Sequence record: MW812339.1
DNA: 64,000 nucleotides
Strand: one strand, 5' to 3'
In this document: positions 5,919 to 33,606 of the stretch, piece after piece
Layout of the letters: the number at the start of each line of letters is the position of its first letter
Numbering within the stretch: position 1 is the stretch's first letter
Notes under the pieces: generated by a model
Told to the model about the DNA's origin: nothing
What the model saw: only the letters and a program-made list of their open reading frames with translations
Database searches by the model: none
Position numbers and translations under genes: made by a program

Positions 5919-5952
5919 TCTTATTTTCGAATACAAAAAAAGAAAAGGAGTT

Positions 5953-10763: not shown

Positions 10764-10805
10764 AACAAACACTCCCGTGATTGAATTTGGTTTCAGCCAG
10801 GTGCT

Positions 10806-11670
10806 AACGCTTCACAGTGTGGGCACCCACCCCTCTCGTCTTCCCGAGCCGCCAAGATAAACCAGATCACCTCCAGTTGGAGTCTCCCCCAAGCTTGCGG
10901 TTAGCAACACACAAGCCACGCTCCGACGCAACGCCGAATTCGTTTTGATTTTGGCCACACCCACAGAGCGGATCGCTGCACGACTGACCCGGAGGTAAGT
11001 TCAACGGCGTCGTACTCCCCGCTCTGGGGCTGCCACGGCTAACTCAGTATCCGCGTAAGCCGCCTTCCCGCAGGTTGGGCGACAATGCCGCGAGTAAACC
11101 CACAGCTGCAACTGAGTACCTGAATGGGTGGTGAAGCGTTGGAATCCCCGCCTACGCTCACCGGTTCTGTTTCCACGGCGAAGTTTCTCAGAACATACTA
11201 AACAAAAATCAAGTGTTAGATTGAATTTTCGTTTTATCGAAGGCACCCACGGTAGGTACTCTCGAAAAAACGTCCTGGGCAATCAACCCAGGACTGGAGC
11301 CCCGACATGCAGGGTTTAAAAAAGCGATTGTCCATGGCGCGGTCAATCAGCTATTCGCATAATACAACACACTCGTGTAAAAAAATTCCCGGCCGAGGAA
11401 CCATGTCTAAATCCCAAGGCCGGGGAGTACACACAGCAGTCGCCCCTCAGGTGGGGGCTTGGTGGAATTACAGGAGTCTGTCGTGGAATAAAATTACCTC
11501 CCAGGCTCTGGTCGACTTGTCAGAGTTCCGAACCTGGGAGGTGACCACCGAATCTACGGCATGTGGACATCGGAGGGTGGTCTGAACACACGATAACCCA
11601 ACCACGTAAAAAATCCGCATAACTCGACTCCACCCTCGGGCTGATCCCGATCGCCTGGCGCACACTCGTA
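10806..11670 (-). ncRNA. Large structured non-coding RNA candidate(s)
   Basis: Nested long-range helices in 10806-11140 plus many 7-10 bp hairpins in 11270-11650; no ORF with SD. Confidence 0.5.
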
Positions 11671-11689
11671 ATAAGGATCACGCGCGTTT

Positions 11690-11816
11690 TAATATACTAC
11701 TACGTAGTAGTATAATTATAATATATTTAATTATATCCCTACGGGATATATATTTAATTATATTATTTATATTCTTTTAAAAGATCCTGTAGGAAACACA
11801 TACGCGTACGTACGCG
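11690..11816. other. AT-rich palindrome/direct-repeat cluster (origin, pac or strong promoter candidate)
   Basis: 22-bp perfect palindrome 11693-11714, 16-bp direct repeat 11721-36/11748-63, palindromes 11773-84 and 11803-16. Confidence 0.5.
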
Positions 11817-12437
11817 GTAATGAAGGGATTTTCAATCCCGTTAAGATCAGGATCAAAACCTACCCCGCCGAAGGGCGGGTAAGTCTCTGTTTTAAAAAAG
11901 AATTTTTGATTTTTTGAAGTGTATATCCCCTGGAGGGGGATACTTGAGAAGTTTAACCCCCAGAACAGACCTCGTAAGTATCCGACAGAGAGTGTCGGAT
12001 ACAAAACGATCCAGTTTAATCCCCCTAAGTGGCACGTAGTGCTACCCAACGTACGATCGTCGCGTCGGTCAGCGAAGCGGCTTGGCGATGGTGCTCAGGC
12101 TTCGTCAGCGGCTCGCTGTTGCGATGAACGGGGGCGGGGAACCCACATGTACCAGGTCGATAGTAAATCGATTCAGAATCGTTTCTGTGACGTTTTTAAT
12201 GATTGGTTAAAAAATAAACAACCCGCACCCCTCCAGGGTGGAGGTATCTCGCCTCGTTGAAAATAAATTCCTCAGATTCACCTCCCAACCCCCTCAAATT
12301 CGCACGTAAACAACCCCACACGCTTTTCAAATCCCAAAAACGCCCTACCCTACTTGAGTAGTAACCCGCACCCTTCTGTCGGTTCCTAGGCCCCTTAAAT
12401 TTGCTGGTTAAAAAATATACAAAAAACAAAAAAAAGA

Positions 12438-12457
12438 TAGGGGACCGAAGTCCCCTA
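12438..12457 (-). terminator. Rho-independent terminator
   Basis: TAGGGGAC-TTCG-GTCCCCTA followed by U-run on minus strand. Confidence 0.85.
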
Positions 12458-12468
12458 CTGTTCAGTTA

Positions 12469-13689: not shown

Positions 13690-14199
13690 TTAGCACTTAA
13701 TCGTTACACCATCGATCCCCAGATGTACGGGTTTAACCCATAGCCCTGGCTCCCCAAAGATATTCAGGTCGTAAGTCTGATAGTACATGATTTTAGGCGG
13801 CACATGCACACCCATTCTTTGCAAGAACTCCCAAACGGCGGTATAGCGTTCGCGGGTGATAAACAGCAAACCCGAATCGAACCCTGACCCGATGTCCAGG
13901 AAATTGCCAAGAGTGTTGTCAAAACTTGACACGCCGTCTTGGGTAAGCGCCACCAACCCCTTGGTAAGATCGTGGTGGTTCTCGATGAACTCACACAAAT
14001 CCACCACGGTGAACTGGCCGAAAATGCGACGAAGGACGGCTGCGACCGCCAGGATTTCGCTGGTATTTCCGTAGTCACCTAATGGGTTATGGTCGACCAT
14101 TGCTGTAATTATGCTTGTGTCACACAGCTCCATCAAGCGGGCATCCTGGCACACTACTTGAAGTCTCTGTCCTACATGCATGGTTGGCGCAGTAAACAT
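13690..14199 (-). CDS. Hypothetical protein, about 169 aa
   Basis: GGAG SD before ATG 14199. Confidence 0.7.
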   Translation of the reverse strand: MFTAPTMHVGQRLQVVCQDARLMELCDTSIITAMVDHNPLGDYGNTSEILAVAAVLRRIFGQFTVVDLCEFIENHHDLTKGLVALTQDGVSSFDNTLGNFLDIGSGFDSGLLFITRERYTAVWEFLQRMGVHVPPKIMYYQTYDLNIFGEPGLWVKPVHLGIDGVTIKC

Positions 14200-16857: not shown

Positions 16858-17097
16858 TCAGGCAACTCCTGATACAGCGATTTGGTGCAAGGTATACACC
16901 GTGTGTAAGCCAGCCGTGGAGAGACCCCCGACGACCAGAACGCCAAAGACAACAACCATCTGTCCCACTCGAAGAGTACGACTGGTAACATTGTTCTCTA
17001 GTGCGTGCTGACGAATCACTGCAATGGTGTGCCGTACACCGTAGTATAGGCAAATCCACATTAACAGAACTATGCAATAGTAGAGTTGAGTCATCAC
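16858..17097 (-). CDS. Small membrane protein, 79 aa, two hydrophobic segments
   Basis: Coupled to terminase stop; segments LYYCIVLLMWICLYY and VVVFGVLVVGGLSTAGL. Confidence 0.55.
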   Translation of the reverse strand: MMTQLYYCIVLLMWICLYYGVRHTIAVIRQHALENNVTSRTLRVGQMVVVFGVLVVGGLSTAGLHTVYTLHQIAVSGVA

Positions 17098-19205
17098 TTC
17101 ATCCTCTGTCGTTGGATCAGCTCTTTCAAGCTTTCCATCGATGCGACATTTCTCATGTCGGTGTTGAGTTGAGAAACGAGGGCTTGGATGCGACTTCGGT
17201 AGGACAGCTGTTGAACCGGGTCGACGGCCAACTGCGCCTGCTTGATCATCACCTCAATGTCCCCCATCAGTTTTTGTTGCTTTTCTTCTTCCTCGACTGC
17301 AGCCTCTTCATCGAAATCACCCTCACCTCCTCCTAACAAGTTGCGGTTACGCATCATCAGTCGGCTGTTACTTATTCCGTAATGACCTAAGTTGTGACCG
17401 AAGAGAAGCAACCACATTGCTAAGAGCCAGGAGATTACAAGGTCATCGTGTCCGGACGCGCGGTGGTCAATACGGCCGTTACGCTCGACGAGACCGAGGA
17501 TTTGGTCGATTAATTCACCTGACCGCAAAAGGTCTGCAGACAGTCGTAGCGCCGTGGTGAATACCTCACCATACAACTTACGGCGTTTATCCTGGTCGGT
17601 TGAGAAACCGATGTACTTGCGGAATTTATCCCAGAAGCGTTCCGCACTACCCACAGGGCCTCGATGGAACTCTTTGAATAGATCATCGTTACGGGAGTAG
17701 TCCTGGGTAATTCTGACGTACAAGCGACAGTGCAAATCGCGAACCTTAGATTGCAGCTGCAGAATGATTGCATCTGCTACCGAGGAGCCGGTAGACCGTC
17801 GTTCCAGAATGAGAACCGTGTTCGGATACTTAATCATGAAGTCGGCGAGGTGAATCGCAAACCCGATGACGTTCGTTTCATTCACGGTAAGTTTGCCGGC
17901 GTATTCGCCGTTAACCGAGTTGACGATGGACATTGCAATGGCGTCACGACCAACGGCTTCGGACGTATCCAAACCGATGATGTGGCGGTCTTGCATTTTA
18001 AGCGCCATCTGTTCTTCCGGGTAATACCAATCCGTTACATAATTCGATGCAGAAATATCTTTCCACACCGCTCGCATCCTCGAGCCATTCATCCGTCGAG
18101 CATCGTCTCCGGAGAAAGGTTTGTTGTAGCCACCGGTAGTCCACTCACCACCAAAGTCACGGCGGATTTGGTCAGGAGTACCTGGGGCGTTCGCAATCAT
18201 ATCTGCAAGTTCCTCATCCGTCGTACCTAACTGACGGTGATTGTACTTGATGTAGAACATGATGCGTGGAATCTTCGCTGTGGAGCCTCTACGAATGATT
18301 TCAATAAGTTGGGCACGAGTCGGCACATCGATGAAACGTTCGTCCCACATAATCCCTGACGTCATCAGCTCGTACATGTACGCGCCTTCTTCGGTCGCTA
18401 AGTCCCCTGGCGTTGTTGCGAAGACGTTCCCATAAGGAACACCTTCTGCTTCGTTGATACGACGCGCCGCCGTACCCGATGCCAGTGCAGCCGGAAGGAT
18501 GTGGTGAATGTTATTCGTAAACGGACCTTCATCCGAGAACAGACGGCCGGCAGTCAGACCACGACCTACGCCGTTCGCTGCTTCTTTGTCGTTCTGTCCG
18601 ATACCGGTAATAAGTTTATTACCTTGTGCCAAACAGGCAAACGTTTCACGGTTGTCGGGGTCGTCTGGATGATGAGGCCAGAGGTAATCCGGCAGCGCGT
18701 TACGCAGCTGTTTCATTTTGTTAATTGTTTCTTCACGCAGGGCTGGGCCCTTTGTAATAAGAATCGTACGCGAGTTCTCCAGGAAGCGCAGCAGCCACAG
18801 CAACAACGCTGCCATACCGACGGTCTTACCATGCTGACGGAGGAACTCTACCGCGGCATCGATGTTGTTAAAGAACACCCAATACATCGAGAAGTTACCA
18901 CGGTCGATACGAAACGGCATACCGTTCTTCGTACCATCCGCAGGGACACGGACACATTCGCGGAAGAAATACCAGGGGTTTTCTGCACACTCCGCGATGA
19001 CCATCGCTTTTTGTTCCAGCGTTAGGTCAGGGTTAAACGGATCGACCATCCGTAGTTCGGGATTGAGCAGTGCTAAATGGCAGTACCAATGCTGGACACC
19101 CAGGCCTTGTAAGGTTGCGGCAAACTGGGTGAAGTTGGTGTTAGGCGTCAAATCATCCACGAGTGCACCAGGATAATGTCGCCAATCACTTTGTCGTAGT
19201 ATCAT
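17094..19205 (-). CDS. terL: Terminase large subunit (phiKZ gp25-like), about 703 aa
   Basis: GGAG SD before ATG 19205; Walker A LRQHGKT, Walker B FSDE, nuclease IIGLDTSEAVGRD and HDDLV motifs. Confidence 0.92.
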   Translation of the reverse strand: MILRQSDWRHYPGALVDDLTPNTNFTQFAATLQGLGVQHWYCHLALLNPELRMVDPFNPDLTLEQKAMVIAECAENPWYFFRECVRVPADGTKNGMPFRIDRGNFSMYWVFFNNIDAAVEFLRQHGKTVGMAALLLWLLRFLENSRTILITKGPALREETINKMKQLRNALPDYLWPHHPDDPDNRETFACLAQGNKLITGIGQNDKEAANGVGRGLTAGRLFSDEGPFTNNIHHILPAALASGTAARRINEAEGVPYGNVFATTPGDLATEEGAYMYELMTSGIMWDERFIDVPTRAQLIEIIRRGSTAKIPRIMFYIKYNHRQLGTTDEELADMIANAPGTPDQIRRDFGGEWTTGGYNKPFSGDDARRMNGSRMRAVWKDISASNYVTDWYYPEEQMALKMQDRHIIGLDTSEAVGRDAIAMSIVNSVNGEYAGKLTVNETNVIGFAIHLADFMIKYPNTVLILERRSTGSSVADAIILQLQSKVRDLHCRLYVRITQDYSRNDDLFKEFHRGPVGSAERFWDKFRKYIGFSTDQDKRRKLYGEVFTTALRLSADLLRSGELIDQILGLVERNGRIDHRASGHDDLVISWLLAMWLLLFGHNLGHYGISNSRLMMRNRNLLGGGEGDFDEEAAVEEEEKQQKLMGDIEVMIKQAQLAVDPVQQLSYRSRIQALVSQLNTDMRNVASMESLKELIQRQRMK

Positions 19206-31786: not shown

Positions 31787-32590
31787 TTACCAGCTCCCTT
31801 TCCCCAGTCCCATGACACGCAGGTTGGAGACTCTCGGGGCCAGGTGCAGGTACTCCTGTGCAATTGCTTGCAGAGCACCGCGACGAGACTCGGTAGCGAC
31901 CGCGCTGGTTGCTTTCGGGTTGTAGATGATGTCTTCCAGCACCTCACGACTGATTGGACGGTCGATGTAAGTACGGGTAGATTCTTGTGCGACTTTACTA
32001 CCGCGCTGGATGGCGGAGTATTTGTTGCAAATCTGCAGACCGTCTTCGATAACCCAGTCAAAGGTTACCAGTTTGTCGATGCGACGAACGACCATCCCAC
32101 CTAGACGCCCTTCACGAACAATGGCACGCAGAGAGAAGCACACGTTTTGATGTGGGTTCTCCAGTGCTTCCGCTAACAGCGGACCACGTTCACGGTTAGG
32201 CTTCACCCAACCCCAGATTTCCATTACCGGCAGACCGTTGCACGTCTGGTCAGTCGGCTTGACCTCCACTTCACGAATATGCATACACACATTCTTAGTT
32301 TCGATCCATTCGTTACGTTCGATCCACTGAGCCTCGCTCATGCCTTGCTCGTACGGAGGGTGGTCTTCTTCACCGAAGAGATTACCCGCCTGCACTTTGC
32401 GCATGAACACATTGGAGCGCTCAAAGACGTGCTTTGATTCGTTATAGGCGTAGTAGATATTCTCAGAGTTGAAAATATTCAGTGCGCCTAACAGGACGTA
32501 GTAATAACCGTCCGCATCTTTTTGCAGCGTTGCCCCTTTGTTGACCCCAGCGAGTGCCACGCAGTTATAGCGTAGTGACATGTTTTCCAT
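31787..32590 (-). CDS. Prohead protease (phiKZ gp175/T4 gp21-like)
   Basis: LFGEEDHP (catalytic His), FSLR (catalytic Ser region), TFDWV; C-terminal AQE-S and ATE-S candidate autocleavage sites. Confidence 0.85.
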   Translation of the reverse strand: MENMSLRYNCVALAGVNKGATLQKDADGYYYVLLGALNIFNSENIYYAYNESKHVFERSNVFMRKVQAGNLFGEEDHPPYEQGMSEAQWIERNEWIETKNVCMHIREVEVKPTDQTCNGLPVMEIWGWVKPNRERGPLLAEALENPHQNVCFSLRAIVREGRLGGMVVRRIDKLVTFDWVIEDGLQICNKYSAIQRGSKVAQESTRTYIDRPISREVLEDIIYNPKATSAVATESRRGALQAIAQEYLHLAPRVSNLRVMGLGKGSW

Positions 32591-32608
32591 TGGTTTCCCC
32601 AGTTTGTT

Positions 32609-32878
32609 TTAACACCAGTGAATGCCGTTATCGCGAATCCAGTAATGCGACTTGCAAGGTATTTGATAACTCCCAATCGATGGAGACAGGGAAACCACTC
32701 CCTCCTGGTTCGTCATCTTCCATTGGGTTGGACCCAACGGCGTTACCACCTCAATTCCGCAGCCACACGCACACAAGTGAATGGCGGTGTTATAGCGAGT
32801 CGAGACGTAAAGTATCCCTTCGCGTAAGTCGCGCGGGATAACCTCCACAAATTGCGGTTTCATCATCGTTAACGGCAT
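32609..32878 (-). CDS. DUF6527-family small Cys/His metal-binding protein
   Basis: FVE.IP..L.EG.LYVS..Y.TAIHLCACGCG.EVVTPL.P..W...VSL.PSIG....PC.SHYWIR matches the DUF6527 pattern across its full length. Confidence 0.82.
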   Translation of the reverse strand: MPLTMMKPQFVEVIPRDLREGILYVSTRYNTAIHLCACGCGIEVVTPLGPTQWKMTNQEGVVSLSPSIGSYQIPCKSHYWIRDNGIHWC

Positions 32879-32883
32879 ACCGG

Positions 32884-33606
32884 TTACCTCATAAACAGAT
32901 CTTCAAGCGGCTCGGCACGTACGGGGTCGACTTGCAACGCAGAGCGGATACCCTGTTTGAGTTCCACGTCCGCCAGTTTCGCCAACCGAGACGTTTTGTT
33001 GAGTGAACCACTGCGCAGTGGAATGAACTGCACACGATTCATCAAATCACTGTCTTTCTTCAAGGTGTAACGGAAGTACGAGCGAGGGTCGCCTAACTTA
33101 CGCTGCGTGTGGGCAGCGTAACAGTCGGCGGTAATCTGGTCGGCGAAGACCTGGAAACCGTTCCACGTTTTCGTTTCAGACAACAGCTCAGCATCGTCTA
33201 TTGCCGTGAACCAGAACGGACGATTCCCGAAGTCGTAGATGTACGACGCGATGTTGTACACCGGACCAGACAGAACCTGCAGCTGACGGTTAGGGAACAC
33301 AACCGTGCCGGGGTCGAATCGGAACTCGTAGTACGGCTCACCATGAATGTCGACTTCCTCAAACGCAGACGGGGTAATTTCGATAAACGTTGTCACGTTC
33401 GAAACCCCGTAGGTTTTGCGGTCAGTGGAGATAGCAAACAGGCCCACGATTTCCACCTGAGAAGAAATCACCGCCAGCTCTTTAGCCACGAAGCCAACGG
33501 GGATGTAAATGTAACACCCCCCTTTGGTGAGAGTGGCCGTGCCTTGGTCCACTAAATCGGCATGAATTTTCGTCGGGTCACGACGAGCAGTTTCAATGGC
33601 GCTCAC
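32884..33606 (-). CDS. Virion protein, probable small virion RNA polymerase subunit (phiKZ gp176-like)
   Basis: Position between protease and vRNAP genes; RNAP role recalled from SPN3US gp244, not verifiable here; GTG start with AGAGAGG SD. Confidence 0.5.
   Translation of the reverse strand: MSAIETARRDPTKIHADLVDQGTATLTKGGCYIYIPVGFVAKELAVISSQVEIVGLFAISTDRKTYGVSNVTTFIEITPSAFEEVDIHGEPYYEFRFDPGTVVFPNRQLQVLSGPVYNIASYIYDFGNRPFWFTAIDDAELLSETKTWNGFQVFADQITADCYAAHTQRKLGDPRSYFRYTLKKDSDLMNRVQFIPLRSGSLNKTSRLAKLADVELKQGIRSALQVDPVRAEPLEDLFMR

Follow-up and report, generated by a model that had tools for sequence, protein, structure and literature searches.

What function is served by a cluster of perfect palindromes that occupies the most AT-rich stretch of a jumbo phage's DNA, in an interval that appears to contain no genes? 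The window that raises this question, the whole 64,000-nt stretch of DNA that was analysed, comes from Erwinia phage pEa_SNUABM_29 (MW812339.1; pEa29 hereafter), an SPN3US-like jumbo phage of the genus Seoulvirus. Positions given below are those of the window, to which 124,000 is added to obtain those of the record, and genome-wide rankings refer to the 248,836-bp genome as rebuilt from five pieces. An earlier, sequence-only reading of the window had proposed a DNA-unwinding element that carries binding sites for dimeric proteins, with a role as an origin, a packaging (pac) site or an attachment site for the nuclear shell. From the wider comparison described here, the site emerges as a conserved cis-acting DNA element that is present once in the genome, is non-coding and has a length of some 250 bases. 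As regards its function, an origin of replication for the phage DNA is the likeliest reading, in the form of a methylation-sensitive unwinding element, albeit that this assignment is made by analogy and is a tentative one.

The element lies within the interval 10773-12468, which is the largest gene-free stretch of the pEa29 genome and is enclosed by two minus-strand genes, with an operon upstream that a strong terminator closes and an HslV-like gene and a tRNA cluster downstream. The interval shares 67-77% nucleotide identity with the relatives SPAsTU, the SPFM phages and SPN3US, and among the records that match it SPAsTU alone has an annotated feature under the match, the SPFM phages and SPN3US having none. 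In pEa29 itself a 92-aa ORF, pEaSNUABM29_00166, is annotated on the plus strand (11307-11585) within conserved non-coding sequence. This ORF is disrupted in SPAsTU, the closest relative, and the homologous lengths differ by non-multiples of three; judged from these alignments, it is probably not a real gene. The earlier description of a 1.7-kb gene-free interval thus stands with respect to genes, the sole annotated ORF not being kept open, but not with respect to emptiness, as promoters, a terminator and covarying hairpins are all present. In the right half of the gap (11860-12460), for instance, there are conserved covarying hairpins such as that at 11978-12002, along with the block ...TAAGT...GTTTTAAAAAGAATTTTTGA, likewise conserved, and a pair of GGTTAAAAAA modules at ~12204 and ~12403.

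At the centre of the element is an AT core of 94 bp and 17% GC (11685-11778), which is the candidate unwinding element. The site had already been described as the most AT-rich in the window, and with 16% GC per 100 bp against a window mean of 50.6% it is indeed so; nor is any other stretch of the genome richer in AT at scales of 60, 100 and 200 bp. By nearest-neighbour stability the site is the least stable of all: its 100 bp come to -98.7 kcal/mol, where the genome averages -142.0 (sd 5.7) and the second-weakest 100 bp reach -111.4 kcal/mol. The palindromes and repeats that had been listed from the sequence were each found in their places. They comprise a perfect 22-bp palindrome (hairpin 1, 11693-11714); a second hairpin with an 8-bp stem and a 3-nt loop (hairpin 2, 11732-11750), the stems of which are overlapped and flanked by the two copies of an AT-only 16-nt direct repeat (11721-11736 and 11748-11763; 0 matches expected in shuffles); the palindrome TCTTTTAAAAGA at 11773-11784; and the 14-bp palindrome CGCGTACGTACGCG at 11803-11816. 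By length, the 22-mer ranks fifth among the perfect palindromes of the whole genome. Since the four longer ones are GC-rich, occur at convergent gene ends and look like two-way terminators, it is the longest palindrome without a terminator explanation. The four themselves (L005:42991, L007:41037, L007:49876 and L008:39174 in the genome pieces) are perfect 24-26 bp palindromes around CCCTAGGG, sit exactly between convergent genes, and are probably two-way terminators.

The core is held between two short boxes, and it is in these that the element is conserved at the level of sequence. The left box TAATAAGGATCACGCG (11669-11684), which has a GATC (11676) and in which a CG-alternating run begins, is identical in eight of nine aligned relatives, having diverged in ChrisDB. 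The right box (11773-11794) is made up of a TTTT|AAAA palindrome and GATCCTGTAGGA, has a GATC at 11783, and includes the most conserved part of the whole element, TTAAAAGATCCTGNAGGA, which is invariant in nine of nine aligned sequences. The GATCCT of the right box is the inverted partner of the AGGATC at 11674 in the left box, and in a single-strand fold the two boxes pair with each other and close the core (-22.2 kcal/mol, z -2.88), none of 200 shuffles being as stable. Of the nine aligned relatives, all but ChrisDB, which is without the left box, have this pair of boxes with a core of 93-119 bp and 13-19% GC between them.

Within the core it is structure that is retained. The position of hairpin 1 holds the 22-mer in pEa29, AACTC-GAA-GAGTT in L015, AAACCC-GTA-GGGTTT in L020, ATATCT-AA-AGATAT in Erskinevirus and a different palindrome again in ChrisDB, and the stem of hairpin 2 covaries among lineages as CCC/GGG, ACC/GGT and ATC/GAT. 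The centres of the two hairpins are 37-38 bp apart, with the TTTT|AAAA dyad a further 37.5 bp along in pEa29, and for both of these GC-containing core hairpins the complementarity and the 37-38 bp spacing are kept despite the change in sequence. Because the core hairpins change sequence yet stay complementary, selection appears to act on a hairpin or cruciform structure and not on fixed protein half-sites. In other words, the alignments indicate that what is conserved in these hairpins is their structure. In this regard, the proposal that the palindromes are sites for dimeric proteins is only partly right, given that the two GC-containing core palindromes vary in sequence while pairing is kept; the conserved sequence is that of the flanking boxes.

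Around the core and its boxes is a ring of GATC sites. No 4-bp palindrome is more depleted in pEa29 than GATC (377 observed, 1261 expected, ratio 0.30), and yet the element is the densest GATC cluster of the genome, with six per 250 bp where the mean is 0.38 and the next best place has four. The outer left edge of the cluster is formed by a small hairpin with two GATC (11640-11654; sites at 11643 and 11649), which is retained with a different sequence in SPAsTU, and the outer right edge by two sites at 11845 and 11851 (11845-11854). In the aligned phages the sites flank the ~100-bp core in two groups, three or four on the left and two to four on the right, making six to eight in all, and their contexts differ from phage to phage (CTGATCC, AGGATCA, AAGATCC and others). 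Avoidance of GATC is seen across the genomes of pEa29, SPN3US, Asesino, G001, ChrisDB and CR5, with observed/expected ratios of 0.17-0.40; CTAG is also low, at 0.38.

The phage encodes a full-length Dam methylase, the gene for which lies outside the window at record positions 32564-33382 (PF02086, 7.6e-57; TIGR00571, 2.9e-75). The closest solved relatives of this protein are E. coli Dam (2g1p, 1.3e-53) and the DpnII methylase, both of which are GATC-specific. Dam was present in six of the six relatives first tested and is encoded by SPN3US, Asesino, SPAsTU, G001, G002 and ChrisDB, and in five genomes no homologue of MutH, DpnII or SeqA is encoded.

Next to the right box is a GC-rich tract of 21 nt (11796-11816) in which purines and pyrimidines alternate perfectly, and which includes the 14-bp palindrome at 11803-11816. 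No other run of perfect purine-pyrimidine alternation in the genome is as long and, being GC-rich as well as alternating, the tract would be prone to adopt the Z-DNA form. The longest alternating tract is found at the homologous site in other genomes too (23 nt in SPN3US, 21 in Asesino and 19 in G001), its sequence differing from phage to phage with the alternation kept. This Z-DNA-prone tract, the GATC cluster in a GATC-depleted genome and the phage Dam are the most informative features of the site, and all three had escaped the sequence-only reading.

Three further whole genomes were compared, those of SPN3US, of the Erskinevirus phage Asesino and of G001, a 237-kb metagenomic relative from IMG/VR. 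In each of them no other 100 bp is as AT-rich as the homologous site (4-17% GC, as against 24-26% for the runner-up), and nowhere is GATC denser (6-8 per 250 bp, the genome-wide ratios being 0.27-0.40), such that the extremes of AT content, GATC density and alternation coincide there in three of three genomes. From left to right the order of parts is two or three GATC, the left box, the core, the right box, the alternating tract and one to three GATC. Machinavirus (ChrisDB and Caitlin) keeps the core, both hairpins and the right box, and the core is the AT-richest spot in ChrisDB; the left-box GATC is lost, however, only two or three GATC remain, and there is no long alternating tract. Since the core is kept in this form even though ChrisDB has a Dam, the GATC ring is a common but not an indispensable part of the element.

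Further from pEa29 the picture changes. CR5 (Derbicusvirus) has no recognisable adenine methylase, and its syntenic gap is without the element. Here too GATC is densest at the AT-richest 100 bp, with 8 per 250 bp where the mean is 0.18 and the ratio for the whole genome 0.17, the site being situated in a 311-bp gap directly after the DNA polymerase gene (L116:13081-13391, Cronobacter phage CR5); this island was rejected as a homologue of the pEa29 element, there being no sequence similarity between the two. Goslar and Simmy50, which are distant relatives, have neither a coincidence of AT and GATC extremes nor a PF02086 Dam-family methylase, and their GATC ratios are mildly low (0.69) and normal (0.98), respectively. 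A search of IMG/VR with the right box added two Machinavirus records only, the other 33 matches being set aside as lacking an upstream AT-rich stretch (<25% GC). In Rfam there was no family, be it at the gathering score or with E relaxed to 5, a match to Baculoviridae_NAE at E 2.1 being noise.

With regard to function, the hallmark of E. coli oriC and of P1 oriR is a GATC cluster beside an AT-rich unwinding element, and it is this analogy which makes a replication origin the most economical reading. Like these two origins, the pEa29 element is single-copy and non-coding, has Dam available to it, and places an AT-rich unwinding region in a dense GATC cluster, with six sites per 250 bp at the least stable 100 bp. 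In the mechanism that is proposed, the core, ~95 bp of almost nothing but A/T between the inverted boxes AGGATC/GATCCT and short CG-alternating tracts, would melt or extrude two small hairpins under negative supercoiling, and the Z-DNA-prone tract to its right might serve to buffer or switch supercoiling. The six to eight GATC around the core could be marked by the phage's own Dam methylase; N6-adenine methylation, in lowering duplex stability, would then aid the opening of the core. A phage initiator protein would bind to the conserved boxes, and the opened core would allow the loading of helicase and primase. The anatomy of the element, its uniqueness and conservation, the covariation of its hairpins, the presence of Dam and the lack of promoter motifs in the core are what the sequences show; that the core melts in vivo, that the GATC sites of the element are methylated and that the element has any part in replication is what we infer.

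Several lines of evidence argue for an origin. The extremes of AT content, stability, GATC density and alternation coincide at one place, and those of AT content, GATC density and alternation do so also in SPN3US, Asesino and G001; the phage and its relatives encode Dam; the hairpins covary, and the single-strand fold is more stable than that of shuffled sequence (z -2.88). Moreover, the element occupies the largest gene-free interval, no second copy of it was found genome-wide (neighbours at the level of 11-mers are scattered singly), and the AT/GATC island of CR5 comes directly after a DNA polymerase gene. The earlier suggestion of a DNA-unwinding element is thus borne out as regards composition and conservation, and an origin and a pac site, both drawn by analogy, would be the two leading readings of its function. 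There is also some likeness to the herpesvirus oriS/oriL-type origins, in which an AT-rich palindrome lies between inverted initiator boxes, as the AT-rich and imperfectly palindromic centre of the pEa29 element lies between the short inverted boxes AGGATC/GATCCT. This is analogy only; sequence and host are unrelated, and no initiator homologue has been identified for the phage element.

Other observations count against an origin. Over the region 11400-12100 there are no matches to the DnaA box (TTATNCACA) with up to one mismatch, none to the AT-rich 13-mers of oriC (GATCTNTTNTTTT) with up to two mismatches, and none to the IHF consensus WATCAANNNNTTR. Iterons, in the sense of at least three direct repeats of ~18-22 bp, are absent, what is present being two 16-nt AT-only copies and scattered (C/T)ACGCG hexamers. 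Neither a known initiator nor SeqA or MutH is among the phage's gene products. The element further departs from oriC and oriR in its covarying hairpins and Z-prone tract, and the phage replicates inside a protein shell that is expected to exclude host initiators. Cumulative GC skew over the whole genome, a check that had been put forward with the original proposal, follows gene orientation, and in none of four genomes is there a step at the element in GC3 or AT3 skew when co-oriented genes are taken; skew composition therefore neither supports nor excludes an origin. The Machinavirus genomes, in which the GATC ring is not indispensable, also weigh on this side, as does the ability of T4-like phages to replicate largely by recombination without a dominant origin. 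The T7 primary origin and T4 oriF/oriG consist of a promoter with a downstream AT-rich unwinding element, at which replication is primed by an R-loop. pEa29 resembles these phages in having RNA polymerases of its own and an AT-rich meltable segment near phage promoters, but the recognisable promoters by its core fire away from it and none of more than 7 bits fires in.

A packaging initiation site similar to P1 pac, in which terminase would act at GATC boxes to either side of a bendable, AT-rich centre and make its first, Dam-licensed cut there late in infection, with headful packaging to follow from that point, is an unlikely but serious alternative to an origin. P1 pac has seven TGATCA/G hexamers in a 4+3 arrangement, with an IHF site between the two groups. 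The pEa29 element is like it in that two GATC groups flank a centre of ~100 bp, in that the phage encodes Dam, and in that packaging is headful. Moreover, the large terminase gene (17094-19205, minus strand; PHROG terminase large subunit, E 2e-58) is ~5.3 kb to the right of the element in pEa29, the spacing is the same in SPN3US and ChrisDB, and throughout Seoulvirus, Erskinevirus and Machinavirus the position of the element, ~5 kb downstream of this gene, is constant. It also speaks for a pac site that neither this nor a small terminase is known for the phage family; a 2026 review of jumbo-phage biology mentions no origin, pac site or small terminase for these phages, and no paper was found that describes the element, an origin or a pac site in them. 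Against this, there are no TGATCA/G hexamers (0 TGATCR in 11400-12100) and no IHF consensus, the element lies outside any gene for a terminase subunit, and the analogous island of CR5 is beside the DNA polymerase gene and not the terminase gene. The large terminase is, furthermore, T4-like, and T4-type headful packaging has no need of a pac site (PMC5694885).

The starts of the sequence records bear on the same issue. The records of SPN3US, SEGD1, EC001, SPFM17, SPFM16 and SPFM2 start inside or beside the core, and three unrotated SPFM assemblies (LR535914.1, LR535915.1 and LR535921.1) have their first base within it. That these starts are physical DNA ends was considered and rejected, since they are explained by the choice of base 1 through alignment to the family (PMC6256631) and by the assembly of the SPFM genomes with NexteraXT/SPAdes (PMC6614189). 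The same SPFM relatives are reported to be circularly permuted (PMC6614189), which, along with this explanation of the record starts, counts against a pac site. For the SPFM starts in the core, a drop in coverage of AT-rich DNA in NexteraXT libraries is a likelier cause than a real DNA end. A hairpin-telomere or concatemer-junction resolution site was likewise rejected, as the flanks are unrelated unique sequence and not inverted copies.

A role in transcription has to be weighed against the promoters of the phage, of which two classes were derived de novo. The first is an early-type motif, TTTCAGATAGATATTATCTACGTGAG, with ~25 sites genome-wide at 25-36 bits, all on the coding strand; those in the window are at 5922, 8410 and 15392 on the minus strand, with ~22 more genome-wide, and the sites are often followed by a small hairpin and then by ...AACCGACTAT. 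AT-rich early promoters have been described for jumbo phages with their own RNA polymerase (PMC7598289), with which this motif agrees. The second class, T6AC-N15-T(A/G)TG, is on the coding strand in nine of nine strict matches and in 31 of 40 refined sites, and usually comes directly after a terminator; its sites in the window, all on the minus strand, are at 11617, 11388, 8671 and 4394, with ~35 more genome-wide. It resembles the TATG late promoters of phiKZ (PMC7598289).

Two predicted promoters of the second class are found 75-300 bp to the left of the core, at 11583-11617 (22.2 bits; predicted start ~11587; conserved in relatives) and at 11354-11388 (22.8 bits; predicted start ~11358). Both are on the minus strand and directed leftwards, away from the core. 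An intrinsic terminator hairpin for leftward transcripts is present at 11272-11294, the minus-strand sense of which is supported by a G-to-A change in SPAsTU that preserves a G-U pair on that strand only. Within the core itself, the best score for the early class is 2.2 bits, as compared with 25-36 at real TTTCAGATAGATATTATCTACGTGAG sites, and the best score for a second-class promoter into or within the core is 6.7 bits, as compared with 14-29 for accepted sites, these being the two classes derived here, with a third and unrecognised class conceivable. The promoter reading of the core is rejected as far as these classes go, as the core matches neither; the idea that the site could turn out to be only a promoter, which had been named as the case that would overturn the original proposal, is not borne out by scores of at most 2.2 and 6.7 bits where real sites have 14-36. 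Since the core scores low and the flanking promoters fire away from it, the element is situated among non-coding transcription units without itself being a recognisable promoter.

A less direct part in transcription is nevertheless conceivable. The element could be a control element of a non-coding RNA island, whether as a boundary, an atypical terminator, or an upstream region sensitive to methylation or supercoiling, which would either tune the two leftward promoters (11617 and 11388) or keep them apart from transcripts that come from the right. Enterobacterial promoters such as pap and mom are indeed regulated by GATC clusters, and two strong T6AC-N15-TRTG promoters lie 75-300 bp away. The gap has nine terminator-like hairpins where 2.7 would be expected, conserved structured RNA candidates are found on either side of the element, and hairpin 2 with its T-rich run passes a loose terminator scan on the plus strand. 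This hairpin has just three GC pairs, however, and is unlike the phage's usual terminators, the core hairpins being AT-rich and without the GC stem and T-run that are typical of these. In addition, the core matches neither promoter class, the upstream operon is already ended by its strong terminator (12437-12458, minus strand) at the right edge of the gap, and a simple boundary needs no joint extreme of AT content, GATC density and alternating tract. Transcriptional control of this kind is accordingly judged to be improbable.

Another role at the level of DNA, be it the anchoring or organising of the genome inside the capsid or the phage nucleus, or a hot spot for recombination or topoisomerase action that works through cruciform and Z-DNA, would accord with a symmetric, cruciform- and Z-prone architecture that has dyads evenly 37.5 bp apart and is unique in the genome, but it has no known partner protein and no precedent in the phage family, a DNA-binding lead on a neighbouring 169-aa protein (13690-14199, minus strand) was not confirmed, and it must be thought very unlikely. 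That protein, a homologue of SPN3US gp002 and the product of the last conserved gene ahead of the gap, scores 0.93 against DUF772 transposase N-terminal clusters in Atlas features (a language-model similarity); seven homologues gave no Pfam match even at E 10, and the AlphaFold model is of low confidence (mean pLDDT 54.5).

A replication origin thus remains the preferred reading of the element, and its implications go beyond the one phage. It is possible, if on balance doubtful, that the element is the first mapped cis-acting replication origin of the nucleus-forming Chimalliviridae, marked by methylation and responsive to supercoiling, with its opening set by a competition between cruciform extrusion, a B-to-Z transition of the neighbouring CG tract and GATC sites weakened by m6A, and with a phage-specific initiator at TTAAAAGATCCTGNAGGA. 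In the search for the sites at which nucleus-forming jumbo phages start replication and packaging, the element offers a short, conserved and unique target. Should it prove to be an origin, it would open the way to a search for the initiator and for the manner in which replication is organised within the phage nucleus, and it would help in the engineering of these phages, which are biocontrol agents against fire blight and Salmonella. Finally, the element would supply a functional reason for the presence of a phage-borne Dam in a genome that otherwise avoids GATC.
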